Shown piece by piece: positions 4,474 to 29,134 of a stretch of 64,000 bases of DNA; positions within the stretch are counted from its first letter, which is position 1; the number at the start of each line of letters is the position of its first letter. A model generated the notes under the pieces. The model worked only from the letters and a program-made list of their open reading frames with translations, did no database searches and was not told the origin of the DNA. Made by a program: the position numbers and the translations under genes. Source of the DNA: Mytilus edulis (taxonomy: Eukaryota); the NCBI RefSeq assembly GCF_963676685.1, contig NC_092351.1:88350001-88414000 (forward strand), in the 5' to 3' direction.

Positions 4474-6413
4474 ACACCCCCAATTGTTTATAATCCACGA
4501 ACGATAACTCTTAATGAAAGGAAGAACATTATTCTCATTATAAAACAAAACAAACAGCATCACTCGCGACCCAGTCACATAAATAATCGATCATGTTCGA
4601 AGTAGACATTATTTTTTCAACGACCAATATTAAAGTGTAAACGAACAAGCGTTGTACGTCAGGAGTTAAAGTAGTAGTTCTTTTTAACTGGCTTTCAGAG
4701 AGCATTATCTAAATTGGATTTAATTCCGTATTGTTCATAGCTTTAAGGTTCTTCACTCATTTTTAACTTGTGCTTTTATTAACAAAAGAGGGGGGATTTG
4801 ATTGTCACTGCCCTATGTTAATATATCAATCCTAGTCGTAAATAATACATGTATAAATGCCTTTTTTCAAATAAATTATTGGGAGTAGTGGTGTATGAAT
4901 ATGCTGAAATGTGTGTGTGTCTGAGAAAATGGATAGACTGAAAATGACAACCAGAACAACTTTACTGTAAACTTAATAGTCCAGAAGTTAGTCAATGTTG
5001 TCTTTCATTTTTATTTGTTTTTAATATTTTTTGTTTCCAATATGTGGGCACAATCCCCCTCCTATGTCTCCTATCCCCTTATAGAGTATACCATATATCT
5101 ATTGTCACCGAGGCTCTGTCAGTTGTATTCACTTTGAACATTTAGACCTGGACATCTGTCATTTGGTATTAAAACTGTTGAAGACCATGTGACGACTATA
5201 ACTAATCTTTGAAAATTTTCATTTTTTGTTATGTTGATCCCGTATTGACTTCAAGTTTTCTAGAATTTGGTTTTTTTTTTTAAATATTTAAGAGCTAAAA
5301 CCAACAGACTTGCCTCCTCCATCCCAAGCGCTTGTTTCAGAAAAAAAATTCTAAGTTGTTATAGATTTTTTTTCTGAAACAAGTGAACGTGTCCTCCCCG
5401 TCTCCCTCGTCTTTGTTTCAACTCGACCAAACATAACTAGTCTTGCACTGTTAGTAATCTTCACAGGCACTTGTCTCAGAAAAAAAATTCTTAGGAAAGA
5501 AAATTCTGGGACAAGTGCCGGAGGTAATCTTTCAGTGTGATGGAAACAGTTCTTTATTTCAGAATAATGGAAGAAACTTTTTCTTTAATCAGAATAACAA
5601 TGACTACTGAAGATTAGACGGGAGGTCTCTAACAGAAATAGAAATCGAAAAATCTAGCTTTTATCCATAGCCGTTACGAAACATCTGCATATTCAGTAGG
5701 TCATCACATCAATAAGATAAAATGATCAATCATGCTATCTCTGTTATGGGGAAGTACTGTTTAAATGTAAATGCTAAATAATCATGTACGGGTCAAAGTT
5801 TATCTTACTATCAGTTTACTATTACACACACCTGATCATAAATGTAAAAGTGAAAGATTTGCCTTTAATAAGTGTAAATTTGTCCGTCGTCATTTTACTT
5901 AAAAAAAAACTTTTCTTAATCCACCCGATACAAAATCAGTACATGCAAAACAAAAACACATTTTCATTTCAGAAAGGGGACGACCATTTGAAAGGGGACG
6001 ACCATTTGAAATTCTTGAAGATGGCATATATCATCAATATGATTATATTTCAGTCAGACAGCTGAGATCTGAAGTTTATCCATGATAATATATCGAAATC
6101 AATACCAGTAATAAAATTAAGAATGGAAACGGGATAAGAGACAACAACCCTACCACGGAACAAGCCGACCAAAGAGCAGAAAACAGCCGAAGACTTCCGA
6201 TGGGTCTTCAACATGTGTAGCGAGTAAATTTTTGACAGAACCTGTTAACTTCAAACTTTAACTGGTGTGTTCAACTTTTTTATTCGAGCGTCCACGATGA
6301 GTCTTTAGTAGACGAAACGCGCGTCTGGCGTACAAAATGTTATGTCGAATGAGTTTAACTAGATTGATTCACTTCTTCTTTAGTCTCGGGCCAATTTAGA
6401 GATTGACAATTAC

Positions 6414-6726: not shown

Positions 6727-7500
6727 TATACATTCTTAACCATATGCATTGCTGATGGACATATGTTTACATGTGCATGTAGATGCCTTACGTCTTTTAG
6801 TGTTGTTGGAATGCTGTTGCATTCACGTATACCCCACATCTCATTTTCACATCAATGACAGGCATTTGTTTAGCCATAATATATCAATATTAAATAAAAT
6901 TACCAACGTCTTGATTCGTGATAAGTTGTATGACGATCAAGATTATTATTACAGTTCGACAACCGCGTGTCAAGACAAGGATTATTTGACATCTAAATGA
7001 TGAAGGATATCAGTTATCCGAAATATTTAATATTTGTTCATGATTTTACTATTTTAGTGTGATGTTTTACCTTTTTTTATAATTACTTATAAAAGTTTTT
7101 TCACATTTATTATATAATATATATTAATACTATCAAATCTAATGGACTAAAGTACATGCATGTAATCTGAATTCAATTCATATTTATAAAAGTAATACGT
7201 GTACATACGATTGACATGATAAAAGGAACACAGATTTCAAATAACTAAGTATAATCACAGATTAATTTCGTAGTTCTATTCATGCTTATGTTAATTTTAC
7301 ATTTTTATTTTCTCTTACTATAAATATTAAATGAAGTATAATACAAACATTCATAAAAACTCTGAAAAAAACTGTCATCTAAAATACAAAACAGTTAAAA
7401 CAAATAAAAAGCGTATTCTAAAACGGCTGCCAAGAATGGAGCATTTTATAGAAATATAGGCCAAAAGCTAATATAAAATTTCTTAAATTTATTTCTTTTT

Positions 7501-7629
7501 TGTTTCTGATACACTCTGTGACTCAGATGTTTTGGTTTGTGATACACTCTGTGACTCAGATGTTTTGGTTTGTGATACACTCTGTGACTCAGATGTTTTG
7601 GTTTCTGATACACTCTGTGACTCAGATGT
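7501..7629. repeat. 33-bp tandem repeat, 4 copies, each containing TGACTCA
   Basis: gatacactctgtgactcagatg at 7508, 7541, 7574, 7607. Confidence 0.95.
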
Positions 7630-8154
7630 ATTGAATGTCACAGAAAAGCCCGGGTTTTATCGAAAGCTGCACGTGTTATAGTCTAAGACACTTGTATATA
7701 TTAATTTAATCTGACATTATAAATACACAGAAACTCCCAATCGGCAATCACCGGATAATTCCTCTACTCTTCTATGCGTTTGAAGGAGGAACGGAATAAG
7801 TCGACTTTAGACGAGAGAGCACCGACGTCCATGAAGACATTTTTAAAAAGGAGTATAATTATTTTAACAAACAATCCTCTGCAATTATTGTAACATTATA
7901 CAAACTAATATACAGCAAACCATAACTTATATTTCATAAAAATTGAGCTCAAAATCTACAAAAGAATTGGACAAGTTTTAGTCTGTTAAACTGCAACATT
8001 TTTAAACAGGTTTCGTCGCTTAATTTGTAGGTGCACTATATTAAAACATTAATAGTTAAATGAAGTCACGAAAACTTGAAATCTTAAATGTTAAGTATGT
8101 GAACCAAACCTAAAAAACAGTACCAAAAAAAACGAGAAAAAACATACAAAATTT

Positions 8155-11100
8155 TCAGTGATCAAGAAAATCAAATTTGGCTTTTAACTTTGTTCTCGTT
8201 TTCTTCTCTTCGGCTTCTACTGTGATTTCGGTACCTCCAAATGTCATCTGCACTACTATTTCTTTGTCTTTCACAGACGAACCTTGTAGAGGTACTTCAA
8301 TCTTTCCCAAGTAGTTACATGTTGGTTCAGTGGTATAGCTGGGATCATCGTCCGTAGACATGTAGACAGGAATCACCACTTTTTTAACGTCGCTGTTCAA
8401 AGGAAAATATGACTGGGGATTTAAAGATTCACCAACCTTGACCGTTTGACCAACTTCCACGTGTTTATCAAAGACGTCACTACATTTGTCACGTCCATTG
8501 GCTTGAAATTTCTTATCTCGTGGGTCACCCTCGATGAAGTCTCGCGTTGTTTTGACTCCGTATGTATATTTCGCCTTCCGGGACACAATTGTGGCAGGAT
8601 TGTGTCCAAACAGCACTGCACCTTTCACTACTGCTAAACCAGCATCTTCCGGAATGATGATTTTCATATGAGAAAAGTTTGTCTTGAGTGCTTCCTGTAT
8701 CATTGCACATTCTGAGAAGCCCCCTACCATTAAAATTGTGTCGACACCTCGACTAACAGGATTGTTTAGAATATCTTTTAAATGTTGGACGATACTATCG
8801 GAAACTTTGGTAAAAAGTTCTTTTATCATCGCATTATCCACTTTTAACTTATCCCCGACCCAGTTCATGTGTTTTGCATATGGCGTCTGCTTGATGCTTT
8901 GTCTCAAGTCGGCGCCGTTATTTATCTCTTCGAAAGCTTCCGTTAAAGATATAGGTATTCGGAACGCAGTTTTACCGGTGGCATCTGGACGGATAGATCG
9001 TTTCTTGATCTCAAATTCCCTAAGTAGATCAAGTTCATCAGATTTGCTATCGCACTTGAACCTTTGTATGACTGGCTCACCGACAACTTTTACGATCATC
9101 TGCATAAAGTTTTCATCTACTTTCGTTCCTCCCCACGCCCCGCCACTTGCTTTGTGTAGTTCCTTCAAATTGTCATTTTCCAGAACTTCCTGTACAGTTA
9201 TATCCACAGTGCCACCTGTAAAATATTTTTTTGGTGAGGTCAGTATTGACGTATCCAATAATCACATAATCACTAAAGTTGCATGATCAAGAATTTGAAT
9301 ACTAAAATGTCAATAACAATGACATATGTTAATATTTTTATCTTATTTGGAGACTATTGTGTTGATTGCAGATATTCGATATATATAAGTTTCCGTTAAA
9401 ATTCTTAGAATTCTAAGAAACAGAACTTCGTTTAAACTCTGATATATACATCAGTATTTACTATCTGTTGTTTGATTTTACGTAGATGACTTTTGGAATT
9501 TTATGTGTCTTTCATACAAGTGAGAGGTTTGGCTAGCTATAAATCCAGGTTCAATTTACCATTTTCTACATAAGAAAATGTCAGTACCAAGTCAGGAATA
9601 TGGCAGTTGGTATCTATTCGTGTCAATTATATAAAAAAAAAAGATGTGGTATGCTTGCCAATGAGACAACTATCCACAAAAGACCAAAATGACACCAACA
9701 TTAACAACTATAGGTCACCGTACGGCCTTCAACAATGAGCAAAGCCCATACCGCACAGTCAGCTATGAAAGGCCCCGATAAGACAATGTAAAACAATTCA
9801 AACGAGAAAACTAACAGCCTTATTTATGTAAAAAAAATGACGAAAAACAAATACGCAGCATATAAACAATTTTAAGGATGACTTGTACTTAGGTGAGGTT
9901 TTGGAATTTGTGTCAAATGTTCTGACTCCTTGGTGTTTTTCCATACAAAGCAATGTAAAATATTTTGCCCCATAACACCAATTTATTTTTTCATATAAGA
10001 TTAAATACCTCATGAAAGGTCATTTACCAAAATTTTCGAAGATTCTTAACTTTCTTTCTTTTGTTTTGAGACCCAATAATACCAATGCAAATATAAGGTA
10101 AAAGTCAGAGTCAGTTTAAATCTCAATTATCTCGAAAAGCCCTATTTATATTTTTTAGCTTATTTTCATCCTAAATTGATGCTCTACCAGCTTATAGAAT
10201 ACATTTTAACTTCTTAATTTATTAATTTTCATCTAGCCTCACCTAAGTACATCCTTAAGTGATGTGGCACGTATATTTTGATTTTGCTATTTGATAAGGG
10301 ACTTTCCGTTTCGAATTTTCATCAGAGTGCAGTATTTTTGTGATTTTTCATTTTGGTTATGTTTGTCGTTGGATTACTCTTTCATCTTAGTGACATAAAC
10401 CCCATATCCACATAAAACATACAAATTTATAGTCAGCAAAGCCAGTCTTTAGAAGCAAAAACTGTTATCATTTTCCACTAAATAATGATTAAAGCCTGAC
10501 ATGCGTGTACATTTGCATTTTGAGTGGCTTATCAAAGCAGTTTATAATGTAGAAAATAGTCTTACACGTTAATAAAAACGGTAGCATATTGGTATTCAGA
10601 GTAAAATCTTAATGGAATTTTCTTCTCGTATAATTTTTACATTTCAGGTCTTTAATGGTTATTATAAAAAAGAAGATGTGGTATGAGTGCCAATGAGACA
10701 AATAGTTGTTGATTTTACTTTTCAAACGACTCAATTCATGATTTCTGTAAGTATATTAAATATGTCATAAGATACTTTAACACCAACTTTCTGCCATTTA
10801 TTGTACTGTTCCTTCAATCTTACTTACCGCCTAGATCAGCAACCATATATTTTGAACCCGGTTTGAATACTCCCAAGTTACCGCCACCACCGGAAACAAA
10901 CTTTTCAACCGGTAGTATTCTGCAATACATGGCTGCGGCCTCTGGTTCCAATGAAATCATCAAATGAGTGTCTTTTATTCCAGCCTTTAATATTTAGAGA
11001 AAATTTTACATTTCAAAAGAATAATACAATCGTAAATGTTGCAATAATTATATTGTCAAAATGGTGTTTAGACTTGAAACACAATTTTAGACATATTTTG

Positions 11101-13260
11101 TGGTTGTCTTTTTAAACTTTTTGCTCCAAACATGCACGTATGTCGTGGTCGTGTTTAGCTTGAAAATTAGTGTTTTATTCTTAAACACTCTTAATTTAAA
11201 ACACATTTAAAAGCGTTTGAAATTTATTCATTGAAAAGACATTTGTACATTTATAATAAGCTTACCGAGAAATACATGGCTTCATTTAAAAACAGAGATA
11301 TATAAAAGCACGTAACATGTTTAAGCGTGCTTCCTATATAGTTTCATTAACAAATTTCATAGATATTGTAGGGCTCGCATACAATCAAAAAGTTTCGAAA
11401 ATCTAAACGACAAAATCCATAAAATATATATATTTGATGGGAACAAAATAGAAATACTGGCTTCAACAGAGGTCTTAATTATTCTATAGAAGATTGTCTG
11501 ATCATATCGTTTTTCGATAACGCAGAACATGTACCTATAAGTGATACCCCTAACTCGTGGAATATGTACCTGAATATATGATGCCACCTGCCTCATGACT
11601 AATTAACATGTACATATGATGCCGCCTACAGGTCTAGTGAACTATTAAAATGTATCTATGATGCCGTTTACCTCTTTTAGCATGTTCTTAAGACACCGCA
11701 CACCTTATGAACTATTTACATGTACCTTTAATATTATGTACCTCTTGTCAAACTACACATGGTGACCTAGACCTCGTGAACAATTCACATTTAAAGTCAC
11801 AACAACATGAACTAAATGTTAATGCATATACCTGCGAAGCGGCTTCTCGCATGAACTGCTTAGCACTATCATTCCAGATCGCTGGTACAGTGAGGACCCA
11901 GTGAATATCACTTTCATTTAGACCAGTATGACTGGATTCAAGATGTTTTACAAGATGGTTCTTTAAAAAACGTATCCCGTGACTAAAGATAATTTGTGCC
12001 GGCATCTTCTTGTTTCCCGAATCATCTGGTATCTCAGTGTGTCTTGACAGAGTCTGAAAAATTATTTATAATTAAGAACTGAATGCTTCTTTTTTGTAAT
12101 TTTTAGGCATAAAAGCGTTGACCACAACACATTTTGTGTAAAGCGGCGCTCGTTGTATTTTGTGCAGCCAGCCTTTTGCGTCAAAAGTTCCTGTGAAAAA
12201 CGTGTTTTGTAAAGATTAAATGTTTAAAAAACATATACATAGATTTTTGGACCTATGACCAATCTGGATATGAAAAAACAGACAATCAAACAGAAAATAG
12301 TCCATAAAAGGTGTAGCAAAAAAAACAATTTTAATGTTCTTATGACATGCAAGAACCAACTTTGTAGGTTGAATTTGTCACAAGCTGTCTAAACATTTAT
12401 TTTATTGTCTCTAATTATCATACATGTATTTGAAAAATCAACCGGGCCAACACTCCTTATTGTATATTGCCAGCGCACCTCGAGGCGATCCGAGCGAGGT
12501 AAGTCACGGCAGGGTTCGGTCCTTAGCATGGTCGATACAAATGCTTTGACTTTAAAATTTGCCTCAGTGTAGAGCAAAATATAGCTTTATCAATGATATC
12601 AATTACATGAAAGTGTCTAGACTATAATTGACTGTAATACCATTCACTGAACATTATGCTGTCACAAAAGAATCAATACATGAGCATTTGCAATCACTTG
12701 AATTTGTCATTCCACTTCCATCTTTAGTTTTGTATTTATATAACGCTTTAAGAGAAAGACATCCATTTTATAAGAATATTAAATAAAACAATAAGAATTT
12801 AGCTACACCCAAGGTCGGTGCTTGTTATGTTATTATAGATTAAATGGTTCTGTACAATATCTTTTTCTTTAAGTAAAAAATAACAACTCACAGTATTATT
12901 GAATAGGGACATTTTAAATCTCTTGAAGAAGTACCAGTCTTCATGTTCTTCCTCTAAAGCTAGCTCTGCATACTTCTCCTCTGCTTCGTATCCGAAAGAG
13001 TGAAACGATTTATTAGGTTGTAACAAGATACATGTTGGTGTTTTTAATGATATTAAATTCTTCTGTCCAGCTACCCATGTCGAATTGGTTACGATCTTAT
13101 TAGGATCGGTTTCAAACCAAGACTTGAAAGAAAAAGCGTAACCGGAAAACGTAGTTCCAAAATCTATGGCTGCCACCAAAATCTTGTTTGATTTATAACT
13201 GACGGAAAAGTCACTATCATTGTTTGAGTCTTTCGGGTCATATTCTTGGCAGTAGGCCAT
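8155..13260 (-). CDS. HSPA12: Heat shock 70 kDa protein 12-like (atypical Hsp70), copy 1; join(13260-12892, 12053-11832, 10984-10828, 9215-8155), 602 aa
   Basis: Motifs AAIDFGTTFSGYAFS, WVLTVPAIWNDSAKQFMREAA, LEPEAAAMYC, DLG|GGTVDIT, GGAWGG, MVGGFSE, AVVKGAV. GT-AG introns in phases 0,0,1; total 1809 nt in frame. An acceptor at 13293-13294 implies an upstream non-coding exon. Confidence 0.95.
9636..9865 (+). repeat. Abundant dispersed repeat family (aagaagatgtggtatgattgccaatgagacaact...)
   Basis: Recognisable copies near 2570-2660(-), 3070-3350(-), 9636, 10670, 24385, 25048, 31600(-), 34112, 35450-35715(-), 43085, 58895. Confidence 0.8.
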
Positions 13261-13319
13261 GTCTGCTTATGTTTTCAGTTATCTGTTCCTGTCTAAAAAA
13301 AAAAAAAAGGTAATCCACA

Positions 13320-14712
13320 ATAAAATAAGAGTGCACACACTGAAATGTCTCGCCTTTACTACTAACCATTGATAGGTTACTACAACTATCCTATCATTTT
13401 AACATAATCCAAGAAAATGAGGTAAAGGTCAGATGATCCGAACTGGAAATACATGTACATTTGTACACCTTACAATCATTTCATACACCAAATAAGTTTT
13501 AAATATACTTGAGCTATTGCACATCGAAGAAACAAACTAAACCAGGAAAAGTTAACAATGATGAATGAACAATGACAATGAGACAAAAGACAGAAGAACG
13601 CTGCAAGACAGACATGTATGTACACCAGAAAATGGTATTTTTATTTTCGAATCAAGATATTATAAGATTATGTGCCAAAACCTGTAATTTTATTCTTAAA
13701 CGACGCCGAGAAGTTTTATATTGTAAATAATAATTAAATACTTTTGTTATATAATTTTACCATTTAGGTTTAATATTTAATATGTACATATACATATTCT
13801 TTTAAGTGATTATCGTCTCTCATAAATCTGTACAGATTGGCTTATGTATACAAAATGTATCTTTTATAAATGTATTGTGTAATTTTATACATAAGGTGAG
13901 ACGTAAATAAAATATTGAATTGAATTGAATTACAATCATTACATGTTTTAAATATAGTTTGCATATATAGTATCTAAGAAATACACTAAATCAGCAAAAC
14001 TTTTAATAAGATTGACCAATGAACCATGAAAATAATGTCATAGTCAGATGATAATTGTCAGACAGACATATACATGATATACATGCACCTTAAAATCATT
14101 CCATACACCAAATATAGTTGACCTATTGCTCAAAGTATTAGAAAGACAGATAAAAAACTAAAATTTAACATTGAGCAATGAACCATAAAAATGAGTTCAA
14201 GGTCAAACAAAACATACCAGACTGACATGTACATTCTAAAATATGTGAAAACACCAAATATAGTTAACCTATTGAATTCTATTATAAAACAATAGACTAA
14301 AACACAAAAAACTTAACTATAATAACAAATGAATCATGAAAATGAGGTCAAGGTCAGATGACACCTTCATTTCTAGACAAGATGGACTTGTACACATAAA
14401 AATCACTCCATACACAAACTATAGTATACCTATCATGTCTTTTGCATACATTATTAGAAAAACAGACTAAAACAAAAAAAAAAACTGTTATTGTCTTCTT
14501 AACAATATAACAAAACTTGACAGCAATAAAAAAAATATTGATTCAGGTGATTCATTTTGAAAAGAAGTATCTTTATCATTTTCTTTGGATGTCTAGATGC
14601 ATGGGTTTAGAGATTATTTTCATTATACCCTGACGAAACTGTGCATTAATACATCCCACATAAAATTGTTCATAAAATGCCTAAGTCCTGACTAAGCATA
14701 AGGGGAGATAAT
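13320..14712 (-). mobile_element. Degenerate Helentron-associated (HINE/pearl-like) element with internal core repeats
   Basis: Repeated core aatgaaccatgaaaatgaggtcaaggtcagatga...catacaccaaatatag; boundaries approximate. Confidence 0.5.
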
Positions 14713-15837
14713 ATGACCAGTTTGGCAAGTGTTTTTCGTTTTTTGTAGCAACTTAATCACAATGTAAACTACTTGAGTGCATCAGTTCAACAGATCATAA
14801 CTTACACACGTTGAACCTATCTATATAACTTGATTTGTAGAGTTGGTTAGTTTTCGCCTTTATACATGTTATATGTATGCAGGATAAGTTTTAACTTTTT
14901 ATTCAAAGTGTATTGGGAAACCAGTAATTGCAACTTATACTAATCCTTTTCCACTTTGCAGGTGCGAGTGCTGCTTCGTAGCGGCATAAGTCTGCTCCTC
15001 AGGTCTGCTCTTTTTCGATATCTACAAGGGTGTCTTTCACATGCATGTCTCTCTCTCTCTCTCTTTATTAATATTCATCCCCTTAAGACGGACTATCATT
15101 CATCGTTTATGAAGACCATATTTGCGAAAATTCGATGATGTATTGTTAAATGTTTAACGTCCAGTAGCAAAATATATTTATTGTTGTTTGTTCAAAGTGG
15201 AAAATATTTCAAGAATATACAGGACAAGAACATATTATTTCTTGGCAATCATACTAGATCTTCTTTTTTTATTTATAAAGAGGACGTCCGTGCAACCAAC
15301 CGGCAGAGGCACCCGATCTAATCAAAAACAAATCAATGCTAGTACCGATTAACATGATTAAACACATATTCAAATATCGTACACACGTGACACATGGTAC
15401 AGAGGAGCTAAGATGATTATCATTAAGTTTATCAGTTGAGTATGTTTATTGAAAACGTTCAAGATCATATATTTATAGTTGTCTCCTCTCCCCAAAAAGA
15501 GTAAATGGTTGTCCTCTCTATTTTTTTTTTTATCGTGACCTATTTCACCTATTAATACAGATTAATTCTTGGAAGAATGTACAATATTTTGTAAACTAAA
15601 TTTTGTCAAATTTATATTGCGTTCGTTAATTTTATTCGTTTTTATAAAAATTAAAACTTTTTTAAAACGAATCACATCTGAAAAATTAAATAGTATAATG
15701 AGCATAGATAATAACAAACACGTACACCATTGTACACTACTGACGACAAGCATACATGTATTTACATTGTATGTATATTCTACTTCCTCATTCAACACAA
15801 CTTAATCTATAATATAGTTAGTAAAACGATTGCAAAC

Positions 15838-16045
15838 CTTGAATCTAATTCATGCATTTAAGTCTCTCTATTCCAATGCGATGTTCCTTTTGGTTGAATA
15901 ATGCTTAAGTTACGGTATGTCTCAATAAAAATAGAGAAATCTTGAGTGCTAATTTTTGACATTGCTTAACAACACGAGTTATCGTTCTTTTGTAACAGGT
16001 TCGAGACAACTGGAGTGCGTAAGTTTGTTCGAGAGGGAAATTTAA
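15838..16045. promoter_or_regulatory. Candidate bidirectional promoter and divergent non-coding first exons of HSPA12 copy 1 and the MIEAP-like gene
   Basis: Both start-codon exons are preceded by acceptors, so 5' exons are needed upstream. Back-to-back donors: - strand aag|gtttgc at 15837 (weak) and + strand gc|gtaagt at 16019 (strong). gggaaattt lies at about 16035. Confidence 0.35.
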
Positions 16046-17320
16046 ACAGTGTCATGTTGAAACGGTCATCTTGTCAGATCTGATCACAAAAGATTGAAAA
16101 TAAATTATCATTTTCTTTTCAGCTTTTAAGTTAATTTTCTGATATATATCGCTTGCAGTCAATAAATAAACTCATCATAGAAGATACCGCGGCAGGACTG
16201 ATTAAAATCATGTGTACGCTAATTGCGTGTTTCGTCTAGAAAAACCCACACGAGACGCTCGAATCAAAAAGTTGAAAGGCTATATACAGTACGAAGTTGA
16301 CGAACATTAAGGACCTAAAATTACAAAAGTTTCGCAGATATGGCTAGGCTAAGATAATCAATTCCTTTGGAGCAAGTCCTTAGTATTTTAAAAAAAAGAT
16401 AAAATATTTGTAAACGGTCAAACTTAGAAATCACCAAAGTGGGCCTCCTCTTGTTGTAGCCAGTGACCATCCCTCTTTATGAATATTTCTGGATCCGCCA
16501 ATAATTTATGATTATGACCGTATTAATTATTGTTTATGTCAACACTGAAGTGCTGACTAAGTACACTAGGCTGGTGATACCCTCAGAGAGGGAGCTATTT
16601 CCAGTTACTTTTTTTTTCATTACAGAAATAACAAAATACTAAATTATCTAAAAAGCTAAAGAACAGTTCTGTATTTACTGCAAGCAAAACATATGACCAG
16701 TACTTCAACTTAATAATTTCAGACTTTTCAGCTGATGTTAGAATAAAAAATAAAACCGAAAAATTCATATACAAACACTATGTCTGGCAGATGAGAGTCA
16801 AGACTTTTGAAAACGGGGTGTTAACTAGGCAACGTTTAGAGTATAGCCCGAGTATAGCCCGAGTATAGCATATCAAATTTTAAGCATTAACCATATTATA
16901 TATAGCCTTTTTAATCCTCCTAGCTAGTCAATATCTCCTTTCAGTTTTTGGTGGGTTTTTTAAGTAGCATATTTATTTAGCACACGACCTTGCTATGTTT
17001 TGTGTGTTATTGTAAACAAAAAATAGTTGCGGTTTTAACTTTTTATAAAAAAAAAATGATATTTTTTTTTGTGAAGAATTAAAATGTAGTCTTTCATGAA
17101 AATAATCAATTTTAACTAATAAAAATTTTAATATACTGAAATATACTACATCTGTGACATTCTATTGTATTTACAACACAAAAGCAAACATTCGTTGGCC
17201 ATCGATTATCATTATTACAGTCAGCTACGTTCACCTGATAATAAATTTAAAAATAACCTTTTCTGACGAAGAATTGATTTTCTTAAAGTGAACCTCATCT
17301 AATTTACTTCCTCGTTTAGA

Positions 17321-20300
17321 ATGGAGAGAATCAGAAGGTCCCTTAGAAAAAAGAAGAAAAATAAGCAGAAAGATGATAATAATTACAGACCAGAAACCTC
17401 AGGGTTTGTATATATATGCACTTACAGGAGTTGAAATTATTGACATGCATTTTGTTTACTTTCGGTTTTGTGAACCTGTAGCAATGTTGTTAATTTATGC
17501 AAATGCATTAACGTATACAATAATAGGTCGAACTTTAAATAATAAACTTATGACACAGAGGTATGTCTGTACTGTATGTAAACCGCTATCCAAAAGCTTA
17601 ATAGTTTACCATGACTGTGTAAGAGTACAAGGCATACTTATCTCCCTTGAAATGAGCTGCTTGCCATACAACTGCATGCAAAATATCATTGACTTTATCA
17701 TAAGCGGTCCCCCTTAAACTGACCTAATGACAAAGTTTAACATTTATACCATGACTAAGAGGCCCAAACGAAAGCAAGACAAAAACATTAGTGCTTCCCT
17801 ACATCATAGGGCAAATGGCATCCATTCACATATATAATACTATATACCCGATTTGATTATCCATTTTATGTAAATTTTCATTACCCAAATTTATTTTTAG
17901 CTATAAGATTGTAGTGTTATTTCTTCCCTCTTCTTTTCATTTTATACATAAGGGAGCAGCCATTTAAGTTCAAGGGGGAGGGGTATGGTTTTTTGTCAAA
18001 GTCATATTTTTTTTATAAAGTTTTTCAATGCTTTCAATCAATTCCTTTTTTTTTTAAATTCAAGACTATGATATATGGGGTGGGTGGTTAGGGGGGTGGT
18101 GAGTTCAGAACAATTTTTGAGAACAGTGCAAAACAGTTAATATATTTACACAATTATTTTTTAAATAATACAATTGTATTATGTTTACATTTCTTGTGGG
18201 ATATTTTTGAAAAGTTCAAAGAACAAATAGTATACAAACAAGGAGGAACCTGATGTTCAGCGATTGTCGTTTTTGATGTGGTTCATAAGCCAGTGTTTTC
18301 TCGTTTCTCTTTTTTTTTTAATATAAATTAGACCGTTTGTTTTCCCGTTTGAATGGTTTTAAACTAGTCATGGTTAGGCCCTTTATAGCTTGCTGTTCGG
18401 TGTGTGCCTAGACTCTGTGTTGAAGACCTGTAATGGTTTACTTTTACAAATTGTCATTTGCAACTAATCACATCTACTTATATCTAAGGGCATCACAAGC
18501 TTTGGTGAGATTTTAACCAACAAGTTTGGAGTATAGATTTGTGCAACCACCTACGAGGAACATTGGAAGGCTCTGAGACTGATTTTTTTTTTAAAGTAGC
18601 AATATTTTTACAAGCCATGTTCATGTTTTAAACAAATGTTTTCGAACTGGTGATTATTTCAACCATGTATAGTATGTAAATAACAAACCGTCTCCTCGAA
18701 AGCAGATTGAAGCTAAAGTTGTTTTTAGCTAACCTAGTGAGATTTTCTCATCACTTGGCGTCCGTCGACTGTCGTCGTCGACGACCGTTGTCCGTTAACT
18801 TTTACAAAAAATTTCTACTCTAAAACTACTGGGCCGAATTAAACCAAACTTGGCCTAAATCATCCTTAGAATATCTAGTTTAAAAATGTATCCGACGACC
18901 CCGCCAATCATCCAAGATGGTCACCATGGCTAAAAATAGAACATTGGGGTAAACTGCAGTTTTTGGGATATATCTCTGAGACTAAAGCCTTTAGAGCAAA
19001 TATGAAAAGCGGTTTTGTACTTCCAGTTCTATTTGCCCTAAAACTTTCAGACGCATCAGACAACCCGTTGTTGAGTTGCTGCCTCTGAATTGGTAATTTT
19101 CAGCAACTCTGAATCGGTAATTTTCAGCAACTCTGAATTGGTAATTTTCAGCAACTCTGAATCGGTAATTTTCAGCAACTCTGAATTGGTAATTTTAAGG
19201 ACATTTAACAGTGTTTAGTCATTATCTTTTTTATATTATAACAGATAGAGATAACTGTAAACAGCAAACTTGTTCAGCAAAGGAAGCTCTACAAATAAGT
19301 GAGCATGACCAAAATTATCATTTGACCCAATAAATTTTTCATAAATATTTGTAAGTGCAGTTCTTGTGATATATCTCTGAAAATAAATCTTATGGGCCAA
19401 TTAAATCTGACGTGGGATAACATGTTCATCAGGTCAAGATAAATCTGCCCAGATATATTTTCAGACGCATCCGTAACTCTTTGTTGGGTTGTTGCCTCTG
19501 AATTGGTAAATTTAAGGAAATATTGCAGTTATGGGTTTATATCTTGAATATTATATTAGATAGAGATAAACTATAAACAGCAAAATTGTTCAGCAAAGTA
19601 AGCTCTACAAATAAGTTAGCATGACAAAAATTATCAATTGACCCCTTCAGGAGTTTTACCCTTTAAAGTCTGCTTTTTACAATTTTTCGTAAATTTTTGT
19701 AATCTTTTAATAATTATAGACAGATAACTGTAAACAGCAAGAGTGTTCAGTAAAATAAGATCTACAAATAAGTAAGCTTGACCAAAATTGTCAATTGACC
19801 CCATAAAAACACAAAAAGAGATAATTTTGTCATGAATTCTATTGTTGTCTTTGATATTGTAGAGTGTCCTTTGTGTTTAATATGTACCACAGCACATAGT
19901 CCAAGGTGAGCGACACGGGCTCTTGAGAATCTCCAGTTTCTTTTTCATGTTCTGTGCTTAAGTTTTATTTTGCAAAAATACGTTTTCTCGTGCTAAAAGA
20001 ATGCATACATGTAGCATATTTCAAAACAATACAAAAAAGTTTCTTCGTATACCAAGTAATGACAGTAATTGCTGTTTAATTCACATGTTTGACTCTTTTC
20101 AGTTGTGTTTCCACTGAAGTTCGAGTTGTTGTGACAGGGACAGAAGCTCAATCGAGAGTCAGTGAACTGAAGGCATGTGCAAAGAAACTAAAGAATAAAT
20201 TAAAGAAAGATGGATCGGGGAAAAGGAGTCCTGTCAATGATTACAGAGATGAGTACAGTAATTTACGTGAACAAATGGAGCAAGTTAAACAGGTAAAAGA

Positions 20301-23300
20301 TATCATCTTTGTGTGCAACTAACCACGTAATTACAAGAGTACAATATCGACACACTTCGTATTTCCTCTGCAAACATCGAAAAAACTCATACTAGATAAA
20401 TACATATATATTAATATATAAGTACGTCTGAGTCAGTGATAACTCTACAACAGATTTATCTATCGGATCACCAGCAATAATGGTGATGCATGGCTGTGTA
20501 CATTATGTGTAAACAACTCGTCTAAACATCAACCAAACAATGTTAGATCTGTAAATTTGCTTTCGCAAATTTTTTGTTCTTCCCTCGCCGGGATCGAACC
20601 CATGCTTCTGAGATATCGTGACACCAAATCGATAGACCTTACAAAATAGCCATCCAATTGTACCAAACTTATAGAAATAAATTAGTCCTTTAAGTCTAGC
20701 AAAACTATGTAGATGACGAACCCAATAAAGCCACTGAACTTGATGATAAGAGTAAATGAACTTATTTCAACACTTGTGATTTATGCATATACTTTATCAG
20801 TTAATGCTTGTATGTAATTTTGATATACAAAATTATAAGTCTGGTATCTTTTAAATATTTGTTTTAGACTAATGTGACCAGGGAAAAAGCAGCTGCAATT
20901 TAATATTTTGGACTTTAATGTGACCAGGGAAAAAGCAGCTGCAATTTAATATTTTGGACTTTAATATAAAATTCTCAATTTTGATATTTTAGACTTTAAT
21001 TCTCTGTATTTTATAATTCACTATATTTTATAATTCACTATATTTTATAATTTCGTGTCTATTTACATTTCGTATCCAGGACTTAAAATCAACATGCTTT
21101 GCTTTGCATTTAATTCTCAGTTTGGACATTGAGTGAGATGTTATACTCTGTTAGCTAATTAGGGACATTTTACCTTATTCATAATGTTTGTTCTTAATTG
21201 TCATAATCAGATTATCATTTAATATTTATTCTTTAAGTTCTAAAAATAGTTTAATCTTTGTCAGTGAACAATATTACTCAAATTAATTGTTATTTGTTAT
21301 GTCTATACTTGTCAATTCAATTGTGTATAAATACTTGTTTATAATTTCTATAAGCAAGATTCGAACTCAGGGACAGTCCATCTGTAATAAAAGTAATAGT
21401 ATTCCATGCTGAATTGTTGGTTTATTCGTCGCTAGTTCCAGAGTTTCAGTAGTTAGTTTTCACCAGAGTTTCAGAGTCCAGATTTCTCATTGCTATTCAC
21501 AGCAATCGTTCGTTGTGTGATCAGGTGCATCACATAATTTCAGTAACAAGAGGCCATTCAGTCAGGCTCTTGTTGCACGACCCTACAAGTCACCCAGTTT
21601 TCCCCGGTGACACTAATATGAGACAGAATCTTCTTCCAAATGCTTCTACCGCCTTTCTATACTTACAGCAAAATGCATTGAGTGTGTAGGTAAAGGTAAT
21701 ATCTTCGACTAGCTTTATGCTAAGTATACTACCATCTCTTTTCGGAGAAAGATAGATTATCTGTCGGACTAGTCTACTCTTAAACGATTGGAGTAAAACT
21801 AACCTAATAAAAACTTCACGGTTCAGCTAGCAAACAAGCTAGTCAAACATATATTAACCTTTACCTACACACTCAATGCAATTTACTGTAAAAGTCTTTC
21901 CTGTGTTCATGCATATTGCTGTCTAATGACCTTTTTCGAGTGTATAGCCACAATATCCTTTTATGCATTCAGCTTATTTTTTTCTTTTAATAAATTTGTC
22001 CTCCTCTGCCAGTGTTTCCAATGTCCAGATGACGATGACCATGGGAGAGTTGATGAAGATGCTGGAGGATTCAAAAGACCGAGGTAAGGAAAAGTCCATT
22101 TAATTTAAAATGATATAGTTTGGTTTTTTTTTAACTAAAAAGACTATGCTGATCCTCAATTTTAAGAAAACAAATACTGTGATCAAGCAGATGACAAAAC
22201 AAACTGTTCTGAATCCAGATTCGAAAAATGTTAGCAAAGTACAATTTACGAATAAGAAAATTGTGTATGATTTCTAATTACACAAGTGTTCGCCAAAGAC
22301 AAAATGACATATATAAAGGCAAATTTATGTCACCATACGGTTTTAGCAAATGATCAAACCTTATACTGTAAATTTAAATATATAAAGCTTCGACAAGGCA
22401 AACAGTTCATACGATTTTATTTTCATTTTTTATTGCTATTTATTCACAGAACAAATTCTCCTACACATGCTGCAACAGTCCACAATAACGAACGTGAACC
22501 TATAGCGGATTATACATACAGCGAGAGTCGGAATAATGAAAGGTATTTACTTATTAACATTTGTAAGGGATATATGCATAGAGAGCTATAAACGTCAACA
22601 AGACTGCGATCTAGTGACGACAAAAAACAACAACAGATGACATCTTGAGAGCAACTTTAGTCTTTTTATTAAAACTATGATATTTATTTGCATGTGGCTA
22701 TACAAAATGTTGAGCTATTATATATCGTTAAGAGTCTCTAAATTTTTACATCAACTATAAACAGAAACAGTTTTTATTCTTAAAAAATACACAAATTCCC
22801 AAAATGAAAAGTGAATTTTATTTATGACATAGGACACCTATTGAGGAATATGTAGGTTCTAGTAACTTTGAATACACGTATTGGATAAACACCGACTTGG
22901 AAATGATATCAACTTTAAAAATACCGATTATTAGTTTACTTGTCAGAAAAATACATTTAATTGAAAGAACGACAAAGTATCATTTACATTGTAAAAACGG
23001 TCATGTTGTATCAAGGTTTGGAACTCATTCTCACGATCAAGATCAGCTTTAAAAAAAATGGAAAGGTTAACAACTATATTATTTTCGGTGGTCTGGTCTC
23101 GTGATAACATTCTGTCCTGCGTGTTGAATTCCTGGGCGAGTAATACCAAAGACATTAATGTTGACAGAAATGGTTTAGAAAAATAGCCTTATAAATGAAG
23201 TAAACCAAACCGTACAAATGTGACTGGGTAAGGCTATATGCTTCCTTTGAACATCCAGTCAGACTAAACCAATATTAACATGTTATTTACTATATATACC

Positions 23301-26300
23301 TGAAAAGCATCAATCTGCTTCAACAAAAATTATTTTTCTGGAATACAAATTAAGTGTTTCGACTCCTTAATATAACAATGAATTTGAAATGTATGATACA
23401 AAAGACAGACAATATATATATAATTTTCAGAGTAGACACCTCACGTGTACCATTTCACCGTTCACACAGTGTTGATGACAGAAAGACAAGGAAACTAGAG
23501 TAAGAATAAATAAATAAACACAAATAATACAAGCCTACGAGAAATTGCTTCCTCAATTATTGGGAAAAGGTGAATTATATACATTTAATAATCCATTTCT
23601 CAAGTTTTTTTCCTATTATTTAAATACATTGAGATATAAAACTATAGCGAGACAGAAATAATCCGAAATGGCACTTATTCTTCGCCTTACGAGAATAAGA
23701 GATAATACAATATTTATCATATTTTAAAACCGACACGACTCTATACACTATACAAAATAAGTGGCGTAAGTAGTTAACTGAAACATTAGATATGTCCGGA
23801 AGCATCTTTCGTTTTAAACAATTTCGGGAAAGATTGATTATAACTTAGATATAGCATATAACATTTCGAACGTTAATATTACGAACGTATAAAACTAATT
23901 ACGAACGTATCAAACCATCACTACTATAGTGTCAAACAATACGAAGATACGATTGAGATATCAGTAATTATATAATTAGGTATTTTTTTAATAATTTATA
24001 CAGAACATAAAAAAAATATTCATTTGATATGACATTTTCTATAATTAGTATTTATTTTTGCATTATTAGTTATAGAATGCAAGAAGAATTAAAAGTACGA
24101 GAACAGGCTAATGAAAAGTAAGTTGTTAATTCAAATAAGCAAATATAAAAAAGAAGATGTGGTTTTAATTCAAATAAGCGAAACTGTTTAACAAAACATG
24201 TTTCTGATGGATCATCAAATGAATAAGTAATATATATATAACTTCGACAGATGTTTTAGACATTCCACCACAGTTTTAGTGGCAAACATTTTGATTTAAA
24301 GAAATAACATGTTTAAATAGAAATTTTGTTGTATCATACGTAACACACTACACTATTTCACCTTATATAGATACAAATGTATAGGAAGATGTGGTATGAG
24401 TGCCAATGAGACAACTCTCCATCCAAATAACAATTTATAAAAGTAAACCATTATGATTATAGGTCAAGGTACGGCCTTCAACACGGAGCATTGGCTCACA
24501 CTGAACAACAAGCTATAAAGGGCCCCAAAATTACTAGTGTAAAACCATTCAAACGGGAAAACCATTATACATTTTTTGTAAATACACAGACATCTTTTGA
24601 TTATGTTTTCAGACTCCAACGTGATATACAATATTATAAGGATCAATTACAGCAATATAAAGACGATCTTAGGAGGAGCAAAAGGTATGTATAGGAACAA
24701 GCTGTCTGTAAATGGACTTAATCTAGGTACTTCTGATGAAACCTATTTCCTATGTATTAAATGAACATGAACGAATTTTGTGATTCCCGACATTGTTATT
24801 ATTTATGGAAAAAAGTCTTGAATTCTGATATTTTCTATTTTGATAGTTTGAATTTTGGATGTTTAACAAATGCTGATAAAATCCTACTTTCAAATTGTTT
24901 TTAAATATATTTTTCATTTCAACAAACGGATATATACATACTTTTCTTATATTTTTCGTAAATCGTAAATATACTCCTCAATTTACAACACCAGATTTCT
25001 GTGGGCGAGTGACTTCTTTAAAAATATTTTCAAGGGAAATATAAAAAGAAGATTTTGTATGGTTGCCAATGAGACAACTCTTAACAAGAGACCAAGAGAC
25101 ACAGACAACTATATGTCACCGTACGGCCTTCAACAATGAGCAAAATCAGAAATGTATTGCAGAGATATTTTGCCTTATCTTCATAATGGAGAATACTGTG
25201 GGACTGAGAGTTCTAAAATTTGAACAAATGAATGCCAGAATTAAATCAATCAATCAATTATTTAAATAAAACAAATTAATCGCCCTCATTTTAAAAGAGA
25301 AAAGAAATTCAGATTTTCAGTTCTTCATAAAGGAGAAGATGCGATCTGAAGTCGGTTTCACAAAATACCACTAAGATTGATCTTAAGTACTACTTAATTG
25401 TTCATTTCTTATGATCAATCATAGTCGTAAGTTTTGAAACAAACTTCAAGGTCCTACTGTTAATGACCCCTAATGATATTACTAGTCCATTTTAAAAAAA
25501 TGAAACTAGAATCATATTCAAAACAGTGTGGTCCTGGCCATTGATTGACGACCTAAATTATCCCATTGACTGTGACAGCTTATGTGAACGTTTGTCTGTA
25601 ACGACCATTGCTCACTTGTTACTTATTATAGAATTTAAACTGTGGGGACACCAAAGGTTTTTAACGCCTTTAATAATAAAATAATTCGAAAAATTATTCA
25701 TGAATAACCTTTATGTTTTGATTTAGTGTCTTTTAAAAGTACATAGTGAGCAGTGATTGTTTCCGACAAACGTTCACCTAATCTGTCCCAGTCAATGGGA
25801 TAATTTAGGTCGTCAATCAATGGCCAGGACCACACTGTTTTGAATGTCTATTCAAGTTGATGCATAAACATAAGAAAAGATAAATAGACCGTACACAAGT
25901 ACACATAAACAGCATCAAGATATACATGTACTGGTAATTGAGTTTTAGAGTTTATCTATTAACAACAAAATAAATATTTTTATATTTGAAACTTTCAGAG
26001 ACCTGGATACAGAAATCAAAGCAAGAGAAGAGGCACAAAATAGGTACATGTACTGTGAACATAATGTATGTCGAATATATATATGGTCTCTTCTAAATAA
26101 AGGGAACTATTTTGAGTTCGATTTTTACGAAATTTTCTCAAAAACAAAAACATACAATAAAAGGAAAATAAAAGGAATATGATATACTGCAATGAGACAG
26201 CAACCAAAGGATATAAATAACAAAAGACATACAGCCCTCAACGACAGATCGTGTCTTTGTCAGTCACTAAGTTGTGAAAAGATAAAAATAGAATTACCTA

Positions 26301-29134
26301 AGATGCCTTTTAACGCATTAATTGACACAAAAAGAACAGGTACGGATAATGGTCAATAAGATGCAAAATGAGAATTCTGGTCACATCACCAAAAAGTTAT
26401 CAATATATATAGATGATCGTTAAATCACCTTCTTTCAATTCTTAATCATTATAGGTTGAGTGAAATGATGGGAAAACAGCTGAAAAATAACAACCCTGCA
26501 ATTACAGACCTTAGTGATCCAGATAGACCATTAAGTCTGGTAGAGAAATTCTCTAATGTATATGATAATGAATGGACGGACACAATTGAAGAAATAGAGC
26601 AAGTGACAGGAAATGAGAAAGCAGCAACAAAAATACTTCTCACTGTTGTAATAGTAAGTATTACCATATTAATTACACCTGTTTGTACATGTATATATTT
26701 GGGCAGTCTATTTAAAAGAATGTGTTCTTGTTTGAACGTTAATTTGTCTTGAGTTTATTGTAAAAGAGAATCGAAAGGTTACAAAGGGACATTTAAACTC
26801 GAAAAAAAACTGACAACGCCATGGCAAAAAACGAAAAACGACGATACGGTTCTCAAAACACACTTTTGTTACAGAAAGAGGATATGCAGACATAGAAGTT
26901 GGTGTAAAATATATGAAATGTGGAATTCTGTAATAATTGCATTTGTTGTAGAATAAAAGACGCATGTTTAATGATCTGCGCGTATACACACGTATATGGT
27001 GGTATTTGCTTCAATTGTACATAGCAGTTGTAGTCATATATATTTACATTGGGTATTCATAATTGGTTGATTGTTGAATGTTAACGTCCAATTACACATA
27101 TTTTAAAAACAAACGAGTCCTTATCGTTTGGTTTAACCACTTGTTCATCAGTGAACGTCTTATGAGGACAGTTGTCGGTTTGTACGTTGAAGCATCGATG
27201 ATACATTTTATCAGAAAACTTACACATGGACATGGACTCTTTATGCAAAATATAGTCATCTTATGTTTACATTTTTCCGGCTGTCTTTCGTTAAATTATC
27301 ATTTGATTTCCCCCCTGATTGGTCAATTCTATGACATTCTATTACATTGTAGGAAACATACTTAGAATGCTTCGATCTGCGACACAAAGGAAATTGTGCG
27401 CTGGAGCTGAAAAACAGAGGTGCTAGTGTGCAAATAAAGGTGAGCTATGAAAGCACAATGATTTAAATTCGTTATGCTCATGTCTGAAATTCAATCAGAT
27501 TAAAAGAGAAATATTGCGAAACCTTTTAAGGGCATCATTGCAAAACAACTTCAGACCTTTAACGTAAATCAATGTACTCTGTCGTGATTCTCCCTTAAAG
27601 AATTATAAATAATATCATTAGTACTTTTGGCATTTGTCCTCAATCTTTTGTTATTAGTTCTTTTTCATATGCTCTTTTGACATTATTATGTCTCACGGTC
27701 AACGAAGGGAGACACTTTATTTTGCCTTAATTGTTTTCTCTTCTTGAACGGTCTATACATTTTTATTTTCTGACATTGGATTATGATATTTGGCATGATC
27801 GAAGGTTCAATACCAGTGTGTGGCATATCGCCATGATCAAGTTCAAATTTGGGTTGTGTCACTTTGAATGTTCTTGAGATAAGAAGATGGTCTTTCATTG
27901 ACACATTCTACATTTATTTTTCTTACAAGAAATATACACCAAGAGTTACTTGAACGAATTTTTCAAAATAAAAAAGAATAAGCACAGAAATTTACAACTA
28001 TAGGTCACGGTACGGCGTACGGCCTTCAACAATGAGCAAATCGCATACCGCATAGTCAGCTATAATATTATAAGGTTTTCATTTCAGGTTAATGAAATAG
28101 CAGATGAATATAAAATTCAATTGAAAAAAATGAAATCCAATCAGCTGCAATATCTCAAACAGGTAAAAAAAACATAAATTACCATTCTCAATTCTATTTA
28201 CTCGTATTTATCAAATTTGTTTCCTATCAATTATATTTTCTATGTTAATTTATGGCAAACAAAAAACAAGATATTTTTAAAACAGAAAAAAAATAATTTG
28301 GCATGAAAAAACAAGTTTTACTTAAAATTTAAATTTTTGTTCATTATATTTAACATTATGATTAAATCCGTGGTCAATATTTTTTAACGTTTACATCCAT
28401 GGTAGATATTTTAATGATTCAATTTGTGATTAATATTTTAATGATTACATCCGTGTTAAACTTTTTAATGATTTCATCTGTGGAAAAATTTAAACGATTA
28501 CATCTGCGGTAAAAAAAAAATAATAATTTACAACTATGGTTAAATTTAAATGATTACATCTGCAGTTACATTTTAATAATTATATCTGTGGTTACATTTA
28601 CTGATTACATCTTTGACGACATTTAAATGATTACATCTGCGGTTACATTGTAATGATTACATCTGTGGTTACATTTAAATGATTACATTTGCGGTTACAT
28701 TTTAATGGTTACATCTGTGGTTACATTTACTGATTACATCTTTGATGACATTTTAATGATTACAGGGCATTATGCAGAAAATCGCCAAGAGCGTTGATGG
28801 TAAAGTACTGTCACGTATTTCCCAATCAGAGAAACAGTACTTTGAGAAATGCCTAGAGTTGTGTTGGATCATGGTTTGTCATTCTCCGCCTATTCACCTT
28901 GATTGGGAGTATAAAGGTCATCCATTCGACCTTCAGATTTTAAGACCATTCACAGAGTCAGGAGATGTCGTTGATTACATAATTTGGCCCGTAATGTTTT
29001 TACATAAAGATGGACCATTGTTATGCAAGGGAGTAGCACAGGGTCGAAGTAGCAATCATTATAAACAGGGGCGAAGTAGTAGCCAAAAACATAATCAGGG
29101 ACGAAGTAATAGTAGCCAGCATACCCAATTTTAG
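17321..29134 (+). CDS. MIEAP (mitochondria-eating protein C-terminal) domain coiled-coil protein; join(17321-17403, 20103-20292, 22013-22083, 22450-22542, 23431-23499, 24070-24117, 24613-24684, 25999-26043, 26455-26653, 27353-27439, 28088-28162, 28766-29134), about 466 aa
   Basis: All 11 introns are GT-AG and phase-compatible (1401 nt). Family motifs RLSEMMGKQLKNNNPAITDLSDPDRPLSLVEKFSNVYDNEWTD and YFEKCLELCWIMVCHSPP..FD..GDVVDYIIWPVMFLHKDGPLLCKGVAQG. N-terminal exons are less certain. Confidence 0.88.
18722..19938 (+). mobile_element. Helentron-associated non-autonomous element (HINE/DINE-1-like)
   Basis: 5' tttttagctaacct, (gtc)n microsatellite, duplicated internal block, 3' aggtgagcgacacgggctcttgagaatctccagtt. 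Relatives at about 43044-44130 and 63857-64000(-). Confidence 0.7.
19083..19196. repeat. 24-bp tandem repeat (about 4.7 copies) with alternating variants
   Basis: ctctgaat(t/c)ggtaattttcagcaa at 19083, 19107, 19131, 19155, 19179. Confidence 0.95.
20410..20631 (-). mobile_element. tRNA-derived SINE, 5' truncated
   Basis: Minus strand ...agcatgggttcgatcccggcgagggaagaac (B-box and T-arm-like head) followed by non-tRNA body. Confidence 0.55.
20871..20965. repeat. 46-bp direct duplication
   Basis: aatgtgaccagggaaaaagcagctgcaatttaatattttggacttt x2. Confidence 0.9.
21666..21888. mobile_element. MITE with TA target duplication (Tc1/mariner-type)
   Basis: ta|cagcaaaatgcattgagtgtgtaggtaaagg ... cctttacctacacactcaatgcaatttactg|ta. 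Confidence 0.75.
25516..25845. mobile_element. MITE with long (about 55-60 bp) near-perfect terminal inverted repeats
   Basis: attcaaaacagtgtggtcctggccattgattgacgacctaaattatcccattgactg is mirrored at about 25789-25845. Confidence 0.85.
28355..28765 (+). repeat. About 26-bp degenerate minisatellite (ttttaatgattacatctgtggttaca) ending at the last MIEAP splice acceptor
   Basis: Roughly 15 units; the final unit reads ttttaatgattacAG|exon. Confidence 0.9.

Follow-up and report, generated by a model that had tools for sequence, protein, structure and literature searches.

Genes of chaperones and of their cofactors can lie side by side: In many bacteria, grpE, which encodes the nucleotide-exchange factor of DnaK, adjoins dnaK. 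The animal pair HSPD1–HSPE1 (Hsp60–Hsp10) consists of a chaperone gene and a cofactor gene that diverge from a short shared promoter; it occurs universally, in a single copy, and has been proven by experiment. Here, we analyze a stretch of 64,000 nucleotides of the 1.37-Gb genome of Mytilus edulis, namely positions 88350001–88414000 of chromosome 8 (in the following "the window"), in which a gene of the atypical Hsp70 family HSPA12 stands head-to-head with a gene encoding a MIEAP domain. Like grpE, the MIEAP gene lies beside an Hsp70-type gene, and the layout corresponds to that of HSPD1–HSPE1, whereas the pairing of HSPA12 and MIEAP concerns few members of two large families.

Both families are poorly understood. 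A 2026 review describes mechanism, function, and partners of HSPA12 as unknown and notes its expansion in bivalves (PMC13580251). Mieap/SPATA18 is a p53-induced mitochondrial quality-control protein whose C-terminal half is treated as a hydrophobic, structured, lipid-binding region with no fold or biochemical activity assigned in the papers examined (PMC10845071). The two families are among the top bivalve-specific expansions, with about 68 and 53 copies per genome, and have been tied together loosely via stress (PMC8382680); as an anecdote, an HSPA12A and a MIEAP protein both go up in zebra mussel gills after cadmium exposure (PMC11036304). Our literature search found no paper joining MIEAP and HSPA12 and none tying Mieap to GrpE in a relevant way.

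Results and Discussion

Two Genes Diverge from a Short Region

The minus strand of the window carries three intact copies of HSPA12, and its plus strand carries one intact MIEAP gene with 12 exons, which is situated between HSPA12 copies 1 and 2 and is divergent from copy 1. An earlier note on this DNA had claimed that an intact HSPA12 gene and an intact MIEAP gene stand head-to-head with about 4 kb between their start codons: The ATGs are indeed found at 13260 and 17321, which corresponds to 4,060 bp, both gene models are open, and the two genes are closer than claimed, with no more than ~1.3 kb separating their transcript 5′ ends. The same note had placed the MIEAP gene inside a three-gene HSPA12 array, which is correct for its position between copies 1 and 2 but underestimates the array, as seven HSPA12 last exons lie at 88.16–88.46 Mb of chromosome 8. 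The head-to-head pair of Mytilus edulis is genuine, one gene encoding an HSPA12-type Hsp70 and the other a coiled-coil MIEAP protein.

Exons were searched singly instead of as joined spliced models, and the full proteins used are the database records found with those exons. The product of copy 1 is XP_071127564.1 (98–100% identity in the three exons compared), and exon bounds were defined by alignment with a 602-aa ortholog from M. trossulus, to which the four exons are 100/100/98/93% identical. On the minus strand, the first coding exon (12892–13294; aa 1–123, with the DFGTT phosphate-1 motif) carries the ATG at 13260 and codes from 13260 to 12892, its upper end at ~13294 being deduced from a minus-strand AG acceptor just upstream of the ATG. 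It is followed by coding exon 2 (11832–12053; aa 124–197), coding exon 3 (10826–10987; aa 197–250), and the last coding exon (8155–9216, coding 9216–8158, stop at 8155; aa 250–602), which comprises lobe II of the nucleotide-binding domain (NBD) and a C-terminal beta-rich region and is 100% identical to XP_071127564.1. The NBD motifs are present: AAIDFGTTFSGY (phosphate-1, DxGTT), DLGGGTVDITV (phosphate-2, GGGT), and MVGGFSEC (adenosine, GGxSE). The absence of a canonical alpha-helical lid and EEVD tail, which the earlier note had asserted for HSPA12, is borne out by a partial match to Pfam HSP70 (42 bits, cut-off 20.6, profile positions 129–361 of 599 only) and by a C-terminus reading ...FDFLDH. 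In all best matches the closest named relatives are HSPA12A/B-like (RefSeq). Copy 1 has in common with HSPA12A/B the motifs DFGTT/GGGT/GGFSE and the lack of lid and EEVD; it differs from them as one of ~125 copies and as a member of an old bivalve-wide orthogroup. Its best paralog in the genome reaches at most 48% identity.

The MIEAP gene encodes a protein of 466 aa (XP_071127568.1/XP_071127569.1, two accessions for one protein) that matches the Pfam domain MIEAP (PF16026) with 59.1 bits (cut-off 27) over profile positions 2–193 of 195; single exons of the gene match this domain as well. The M. galloprovincialis ortholog served to map the 12 coding exons of this gene, which begin with the ATG at 17321 and reach the stop codon at 29134; the mid-domain exons were missed by tblastn and tblastx with paralogs, recovered by splice-site enumeration, and confirmed with that ortholog. 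On the plus strand, the ATG exon (17320–17403) is succeeded by coding exon 2 (20103–20292; aa 29–91, helical), which is placed by a contig joint and the ortholog, and by six small exons at ~22013–22084, 22448–22543, 23429–23500, 24065–24118, 24612–24684, and 25997–26044 (bounds from the ortholog, good to ~3 nt), which encode a disordered stretch and a long coiled-coil helix. Exon 9 (26455–26653; aa 224–290) contains the most conserved motif of the family, NNPxITDLSDPxRP...YDNEWTD, and the predicted contact to HSPA12. Exons 10 (27353–27439; aa 291–319) and 11 (28088–28162; aa 320–344) lead to the last exon (28766–29134; aa 344–466 and stop), which according to ortholog and model comprises helices, a six-strand beta domain with the predicted fold of the GrpE C-terminus, and a low-complexity tail. 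Human Mieap/SPATA18 carries the same Pfam domain, likewise after a coiled-coil half; the window gene, in contrast, is not a SPATA18 ortholog but one of at least 80 lineage-specific paralogs, and the best Pfam match of the genome lies on chromosome 4.

The MIEAP last exon is present in 20 sequencing runs from 10 studies, 14 of which have transcriptome-like sizes, their RNA status being a guess. Four RNA-like runs, picked for containing the MIEAP gene, were aligned; their contigs locate exons and joints but can neither rank expression nor show true start sites. In three of these four runs, contigs span a GT..AG intron and link 17402/3 with 20102/3, which confirms the MIEAP ATG exon. Two of the joint-spanning contigs end at 17320/17321, immediately past an AG at 17318–17319: Because these ends coincide with an acceptor site and RefSeq holds two accessions for one protein, the gene probably has alternative non-coding first exons upstream, and a stretch of low contig cover at ~16120–16519 may be one of them. 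On the other side, contigs in two runs (one of 1105 nt) end in 15838–15984, with up to 958 nt lying outside the aligned stretch, and a minus-strand donor GT appears as AC at 15836–15837 of the plus strand. We assign this segment, with some reserve, to HSPA12 copy 1 as a 5′ non-coding exon on the minus strand.

Contig ends and splice signals thereby delimit a putative shared divergent promoter region of at most ~1.3 kb at 15985–17319. The transcript 5′ ends are divergent and at most ~1.34 kb apart (15984 to 17320), compared with the ~1 kb or less by which head-to-head pairs are defined; since the MIEAP ATG exon starts at an acceptor site, the true distance is probably smaller. With this layout, HSPA12 copy 1 and the MIEAP gene may be co-regulated. 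A perfect heat-shock element (nGAAnnTTCnnGAAn, either phase) occurs nowhere in the 64-kb window, where about one is expected by chance.

Within the MIEAP introns, repeat pieces are found at 18300–19950, 24491–24562, and 18339–18407 (minus strand), where contig depth reaches thousands in each of the four runs. The repeat includes 24 aa that are 96% identical to copies at two other genome loci, and it probably represents a highly abundant transposable element or SINE-like (short interspersed nuclear element-like) family.

The MIEAP Domain Resembles GrpE in its Predicted Fold

In an AF2 model of the window MIEAP protein (mean pLDDT 75), a long helix (152–236) is followed by a helical bundle (249–382) and six strands (388–438). 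A Foldseek search with the whole model yields no match at E ≤0.001; the top chains are nonetheless GrpE. Comparison of the whole model with GrpE structures by VIA gives Z 6.9 for 1dkg_A (151/158 residues), Z 6.6 for 4ani_B (root-mean-square deviation (rmsd) 5.3 Å, 146/154), and Z 6.5 for human GrpEL1 (9bls_B). For the last exon modeled alone (pLDDT 82), the top 11 Foldseek matches are all GrpE, from six species, with 4ani_A as the best (probability 0.99, E 0.03, rmsd 3.6 Å, 88 columns), after which the probability drops to 0.06 or less. A VIA search of 48,161 representative chains, which is independent of Foldseek, returns Z ≥5 exclusively for GrpE, with four chains (9bls_B 6.5, 3a6m_B 6.4, 1dkg_B 6.1, 4ani_A 5.2), and the next match, at 4.2, covers helices only. 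These searches support a GrpE-like fold of the MIEAP domain at moderate Z, GrpE being the sole family matched, over most of the domain.

MIEAP and GrpE/GrpEL1 (1dkg, 4ani, 3a6m, 9bls) share the same plan, which is a long N-terminal helix, helices, and a small six-strand beta domain. MIEAP differs by about four extra helices and by lacking detectable sequence similarity, and its conserved N-terminal motif is, to our knowledge, not a feature of GrpE. The partners differ as well: GrpE, which dimerizes via its long helices and speeds up ADP release, serves DnaK or mortalin, whereas the proposed partner of MIEAP is a cytosolic atypical animal Hsp70. BAG, HspBP1, and Hsp110 are cytosolic exchange factors that act on NBD lobe IIB and have other folds; none of them is among the matches of the MIEAP fold searches.

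Matches of the MIEAP protein in a sequence search of the PDB were coiled-coil noise only and were discarded. In the ESM Atlas, the nearest named non-MIEAP clusters of residues 224–445 are plant GIL1_IRKI_C (PF24994), at 0.76–0.77 and thus below the level that counts; this similarity to GIL1/IRK-interacting proteins could hint at a wider superfamily of coiled coil plus C-terminal domain but is too weak to count.

MIEAP Is Predicted to Dock at the Nucleotide Cleft of HSPA12

The earlier note had suggested a complex prediction of HSPA12 copy 1 with MIEAP as a check, and an interface is in fact predicted. We modeled HSPA12 copy 1 (602 aa) together with MIEAP 152–445 by ESMFold2 without alignments, alongside three controls, and obtained ipSAE values of 0.75/0.76/0.77 compared with 0.02 for the best control, at least 91% of the contacts being common to the runs and the partner pLDDT being at least 74; the score expresses the model's own confidence and cannot tell which family member binds. 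The mark applied to it is attained by 51 of 78 solved complexes and by 2 of 108 mismatched pairs (eukaryotes: 39/65 and 2/126).

On HSPA12, the predicted contacts are 25–72, 160–168, 308–342, 369–374, and 439–447, which, when mapped by the positions of the phosphate motifs, would surround the nucleotide cleft on NBD lobes IB and IIB. On MIEAP, they fall into 219–269, which is the family signature motif, and 400–434, which is the beta domain. Conservation is considerably higher at the interface residues of MIEAP than elsewhere in the domain (3.0 vs 1.7 bits, p = 3e-10).

Fusion Genes Join an HSPA12-Type NBD to a MIEAP Domain

Domain fusions are classical evidence of two domains working together. 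Such a fusion is found on chromosome 11 at ~43.5 Mb (43505855–43507906), where one reading frame encodes an HSPA12-like NBD followed by a full-length MIEAP domain (Pfam positions 1–193). This frame is interrupted by a single in-frame TAA (L015:3905–3907 in local numbering, the frame being L015:2855–4906), which makes this copy either a recent pseudogene or a polymorphism. An open fusion paralog of M. edulis, XP_071140034.1, is encoded on the same chromosome, is 73% identical, and spans the position of the TAA; further open relatives are XP_052084451.1 of M. californianus and CAG2214437.1 (27% identical full-length, 656/643 aa). In the ESM Atlas, the fusion protein is merely Hsp70-like (0.80), below the level that counts.

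The fusions also bear on the question of which Hsp70 is involved. Human Mieap acts at mitochondria (PMC3022026, PMC10845071), and the complex test is blind to which family member binds; MIEAP might be GrpE-like and yet serve a different Hsp70, for instance the mitochondrial Hsp70 or the cytosolic Hsc70, with the HSPA12 neighbor being incidental. We consider this very unlikely: The fused NBD is of the HSPA12 type (40% identity to HSPA12 exon 1, E 5e-17), which indicates that the partner of MIEAP is of the HSPA12 type, the linked genes described below are always HSPA12, and it is with HSPA12 that MIEAP has co-expanded (PMC8382680).

Linkage of HSPA12 and MIEAP across the Genome and in Other Bivalves

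Genome-wide, chromosome 8 carries 40 of the ~124 HSPA12 last exons found (union of three queries) and 72 of the MIEAP last exons, which number at least 83. The earlier note's statement that HSPA12 is strongly expanded in bivalves agrees with its rank as a top bivalve-specific expansion (PMC8382680). Within 20 kb of an HSPA12 gene lie five MIEAP genes at four places of chromosome 8 (14.30, 25.35, 28.92, and 88.37 Mb), and at three of these four places the pair is divergent; the place at 28.92 Mb has just 2 kb between HSPA12 exon 1 and the first exon of the MIEAP domain. The earlier note had called for a comparison with shuffled gene order across molluscs and other invertebrates; for chromosome 8 of this genome, we compared the positions with circular shifts, which preserve the clustering of both families: Four places stand against a mean expectation of 0.59 (P = 0.005), and at 50 kb P = 0.015. 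Within the genome, a comparison aimed at co-duplication found the MIEAP exons of the window no closer to other HSPA12-linked copies than to unlinked copies.

In other species, linkage was read indirectly, from locus-tag numbers and scaffold lengths in match tables, and both family trees are quick trees with support by the approximate likelihood-ratio test (aLRT) only. In M. galloprovincialis, the orthologs of both genes lie on one 176-kb scaffold, and in an older M. edulis assembly they have consecutive accession numbers. Two unionid mussels show linkage too: On a single 1.78-Mb scaffold of Potamilus, MIEAP genes (CHS0354_026361, 026371) and HSPA12 genes (026367, 026375, 026379) are interleaved by locus tag, and in Sinanodonta HSPA12 and MIEAP are found at ACJMK2_031001/031003. 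The orthogroup of copy 1 is old, with scallops, oysters, Pinctada, Tegillarca, and Solemya (aLRT 99) at 54–59% identity. Its sister clade consists of the four linked unionid HSPA12s (aLRT 94), whereas other unionid HSPA12s are found elsewhere in the tree. The window MIEAP shares its orthogroup with scallop and oyster genes (aLRT 82); the MIEAPs linked in unionids group in a clade that is not firmly placed beside this orthogroup. Among the matches listed, both families occur on a common chromosome in Mya, Crassostrea virginica, Argopecten, Mercenaria, Dreissena, Pinctada, and Tegillarca, which may reflect one old linkage group. A scan of metagenomes with HSPA12 exon 1 (80 loci, 378 kb) gave no MIEAP match, a result without weight as the contigs are mostly below 7 kb and too short to reach a neighbor gene.

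Large tandem MIEAP arrays are located on chromosome 8 at 25.31–25.70, 36.34–36.67, 37.87–38.00, and 38.85–39.02 Mb. On the minus strand of chromosome 2 (4591781–4594120), a single-exon frame of 780 aa encodes a MIEAP domain along with a coiled coil and a B-box zinc finger and thereby resembles a TRIM protein that lacks the RING; another MIEAP frame is found at a distance of 4.6 kb.

MIEAP as a Candidate Co-Chaperone of HSPA12

In the most likely explanation of these findings, the MIEAP protein would serve HSPA12-type ATPases as a dedicated co-chaperone. It would use the conserved N-terminal motif together with the beta domain to clamp the top of the nucleotide cleft at lobes IB and IIB, clamping would control ADP/ATP exchange by analogy with GrpE, and the short divergent promoter region would permit joint production of both proteins. 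Four mutually independent lines of computed evidence, namely the fold, the docking together with the conservation, the fusions, and the linkage together with the phylogeny, make a direct partnership of HSPA12 and MIEAP likely in our estimation. For a GrpE-like control of the HSPA12 nucleotide cycle, an activity deduced from fold and docking site alone, the balance is even. Doubtful, though worth stating, is the extension to the whole MIEAP/SPATA18 family including human Mieap, whose members would then be GrpE-fold exchange cofactors dedicated to HSPA12-type Hsp70s.

Several observations weigh against this co-chaperone role. The Z values of 5–7 in the fold comparison are below the VIA caution line of 8; XP_071127568.1 has no match to Pfam GrpE (PF01025) at E up to 10, and no GrpE is found among 453 weak PDB profile matches. 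The HSPA12 residues of the predicted interface show no excess of conservation over the remaining NBD, and the complex predictor may be recalling solved DnaK–GrpE complexes. Furthermore, 67 of the 72 MIEAP genes on chromosome 8 have no HSPA12 gene within 20 kb, and the orthologs of the two genes reside on different scaffolds in Mizuhopecten (475,870 vs 320,268 bp) and Ylistrum (2.54 vs 2.18 Mb), which argues against deep conservation of the pair. The former figure means that the link of HSPA12 and MIEAP is not a gene-pair rule, and since most copies of both families are unlinked, we view the window pair as a revealing case of a partnership at the level of the families and not as their general layout. 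Of the Hsp70–cofactor pair that the earlier note had envisaged, the GrpE-like fold, the predicted docking, the fusions, and the short divergent promoter region speak in favor, while its generality as a gene pair did not hold.

The many unlinked copies and the separated scallop orthologs would also be expected if the linkage were a by-product of two fast-expanding families on one chromosome with duplication hot spots, where the proteins do not interact and the docking is a memory of DnaK–GrpE. The crowding of both families on chromosome 8, which represents 6.6% of the genome and holds the shares of MIEAP and HSPA12 matches given above (72/83 and 40/124), fits this explanation, as does the fact that 7 of 44 blind neighbor pairs passed the complex test in its own trial. 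It is nevertheless improbable in our view, as the excess of linked places persists under shifts that retain the clustering, and as it leaves the fusions, the exclusive fold match to GrpE, and the concentration of invariant MIEAP residues at the predicted interface unexplained.

A different objection emerges from the fusions themselves: Their NBDs are degenerate and have lost the phosphate loops (DxGTT and GGGT), and the C-terminal domain typical of HSPA12 is replaced by MIEAP, which is as compatible with a scaffold or adaptor as it is with an exchange factor. Moreover, human Mieap is known as a condensate-forming, cardiolipin-related protein that is not described as a co-chaperone, its condensates depending on the half with coiled coil and intrinsically disordered region and on the structured C-terminal half (PMC10845071). 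The two proteins might accordingly bind each other with MIEAP being an adaptor, client, or effector that HSPA12 holds, remodels, or localizes, for example by controlling coiled-coil assemblies or condensates of MIEAP. The docking result, which speaks to contact and not to activity, and the swap of the C-terminal domain in fusions that have lost their phosphate loops, which looks more like a scaffold than like an enzyme cycle, agree with such a role. We nonetheless rate it as rather unlikely, given that the sole fold match is a nucleotide-exchange factor and that the predicted IB/IIB site at the top of the cleft, as far as our mapping and comparison go, resembles the site used by GrpE.

If MIEAP is a GrpE-like regulator of HSPA12, as the co-chaperone explanation has it, both families gain a hypothesis that is testable with purified proteins, Mieap/SPATA18 is supplied with a hypothesis for its fold and activity, and the joint bivalve expansion (PMC8382680) has a common cause. 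Should the cofactor role apply family-wide, this expansion would have built many matched chaperone–cofactor pairs for stress or immune defense.

Further Features of the Window

The remaining HSPA12 genes of the window, whose exons were placed by ortholog alignment, have the same four-exon build as copy 1 and no stop codon in frame. Copy 2 (32096–36053, minus strand) is open and convergent with the MIEAP gene, and copy 3 (48094–51989, minus strand) is likewise open, its last exon being 81% identical to that of copy 2. Between these two copies, the stretch 38400–40100 has a G+C content of 0.41 compared with ~0.33 and contains several frames of 90–134 aa on both strands with common motifs (...SYDNxELFW...); it may be a repeat or mobile element. 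Two short tandem-repeat tracts at 4146–4507 and 7446–7641 read as open frames with units such as ...HHQSHSSKPSTTNRIQANPAPPIAFKQTQ... and ...SESQSVSQTKT... and are likely minisatellites instead of genes.

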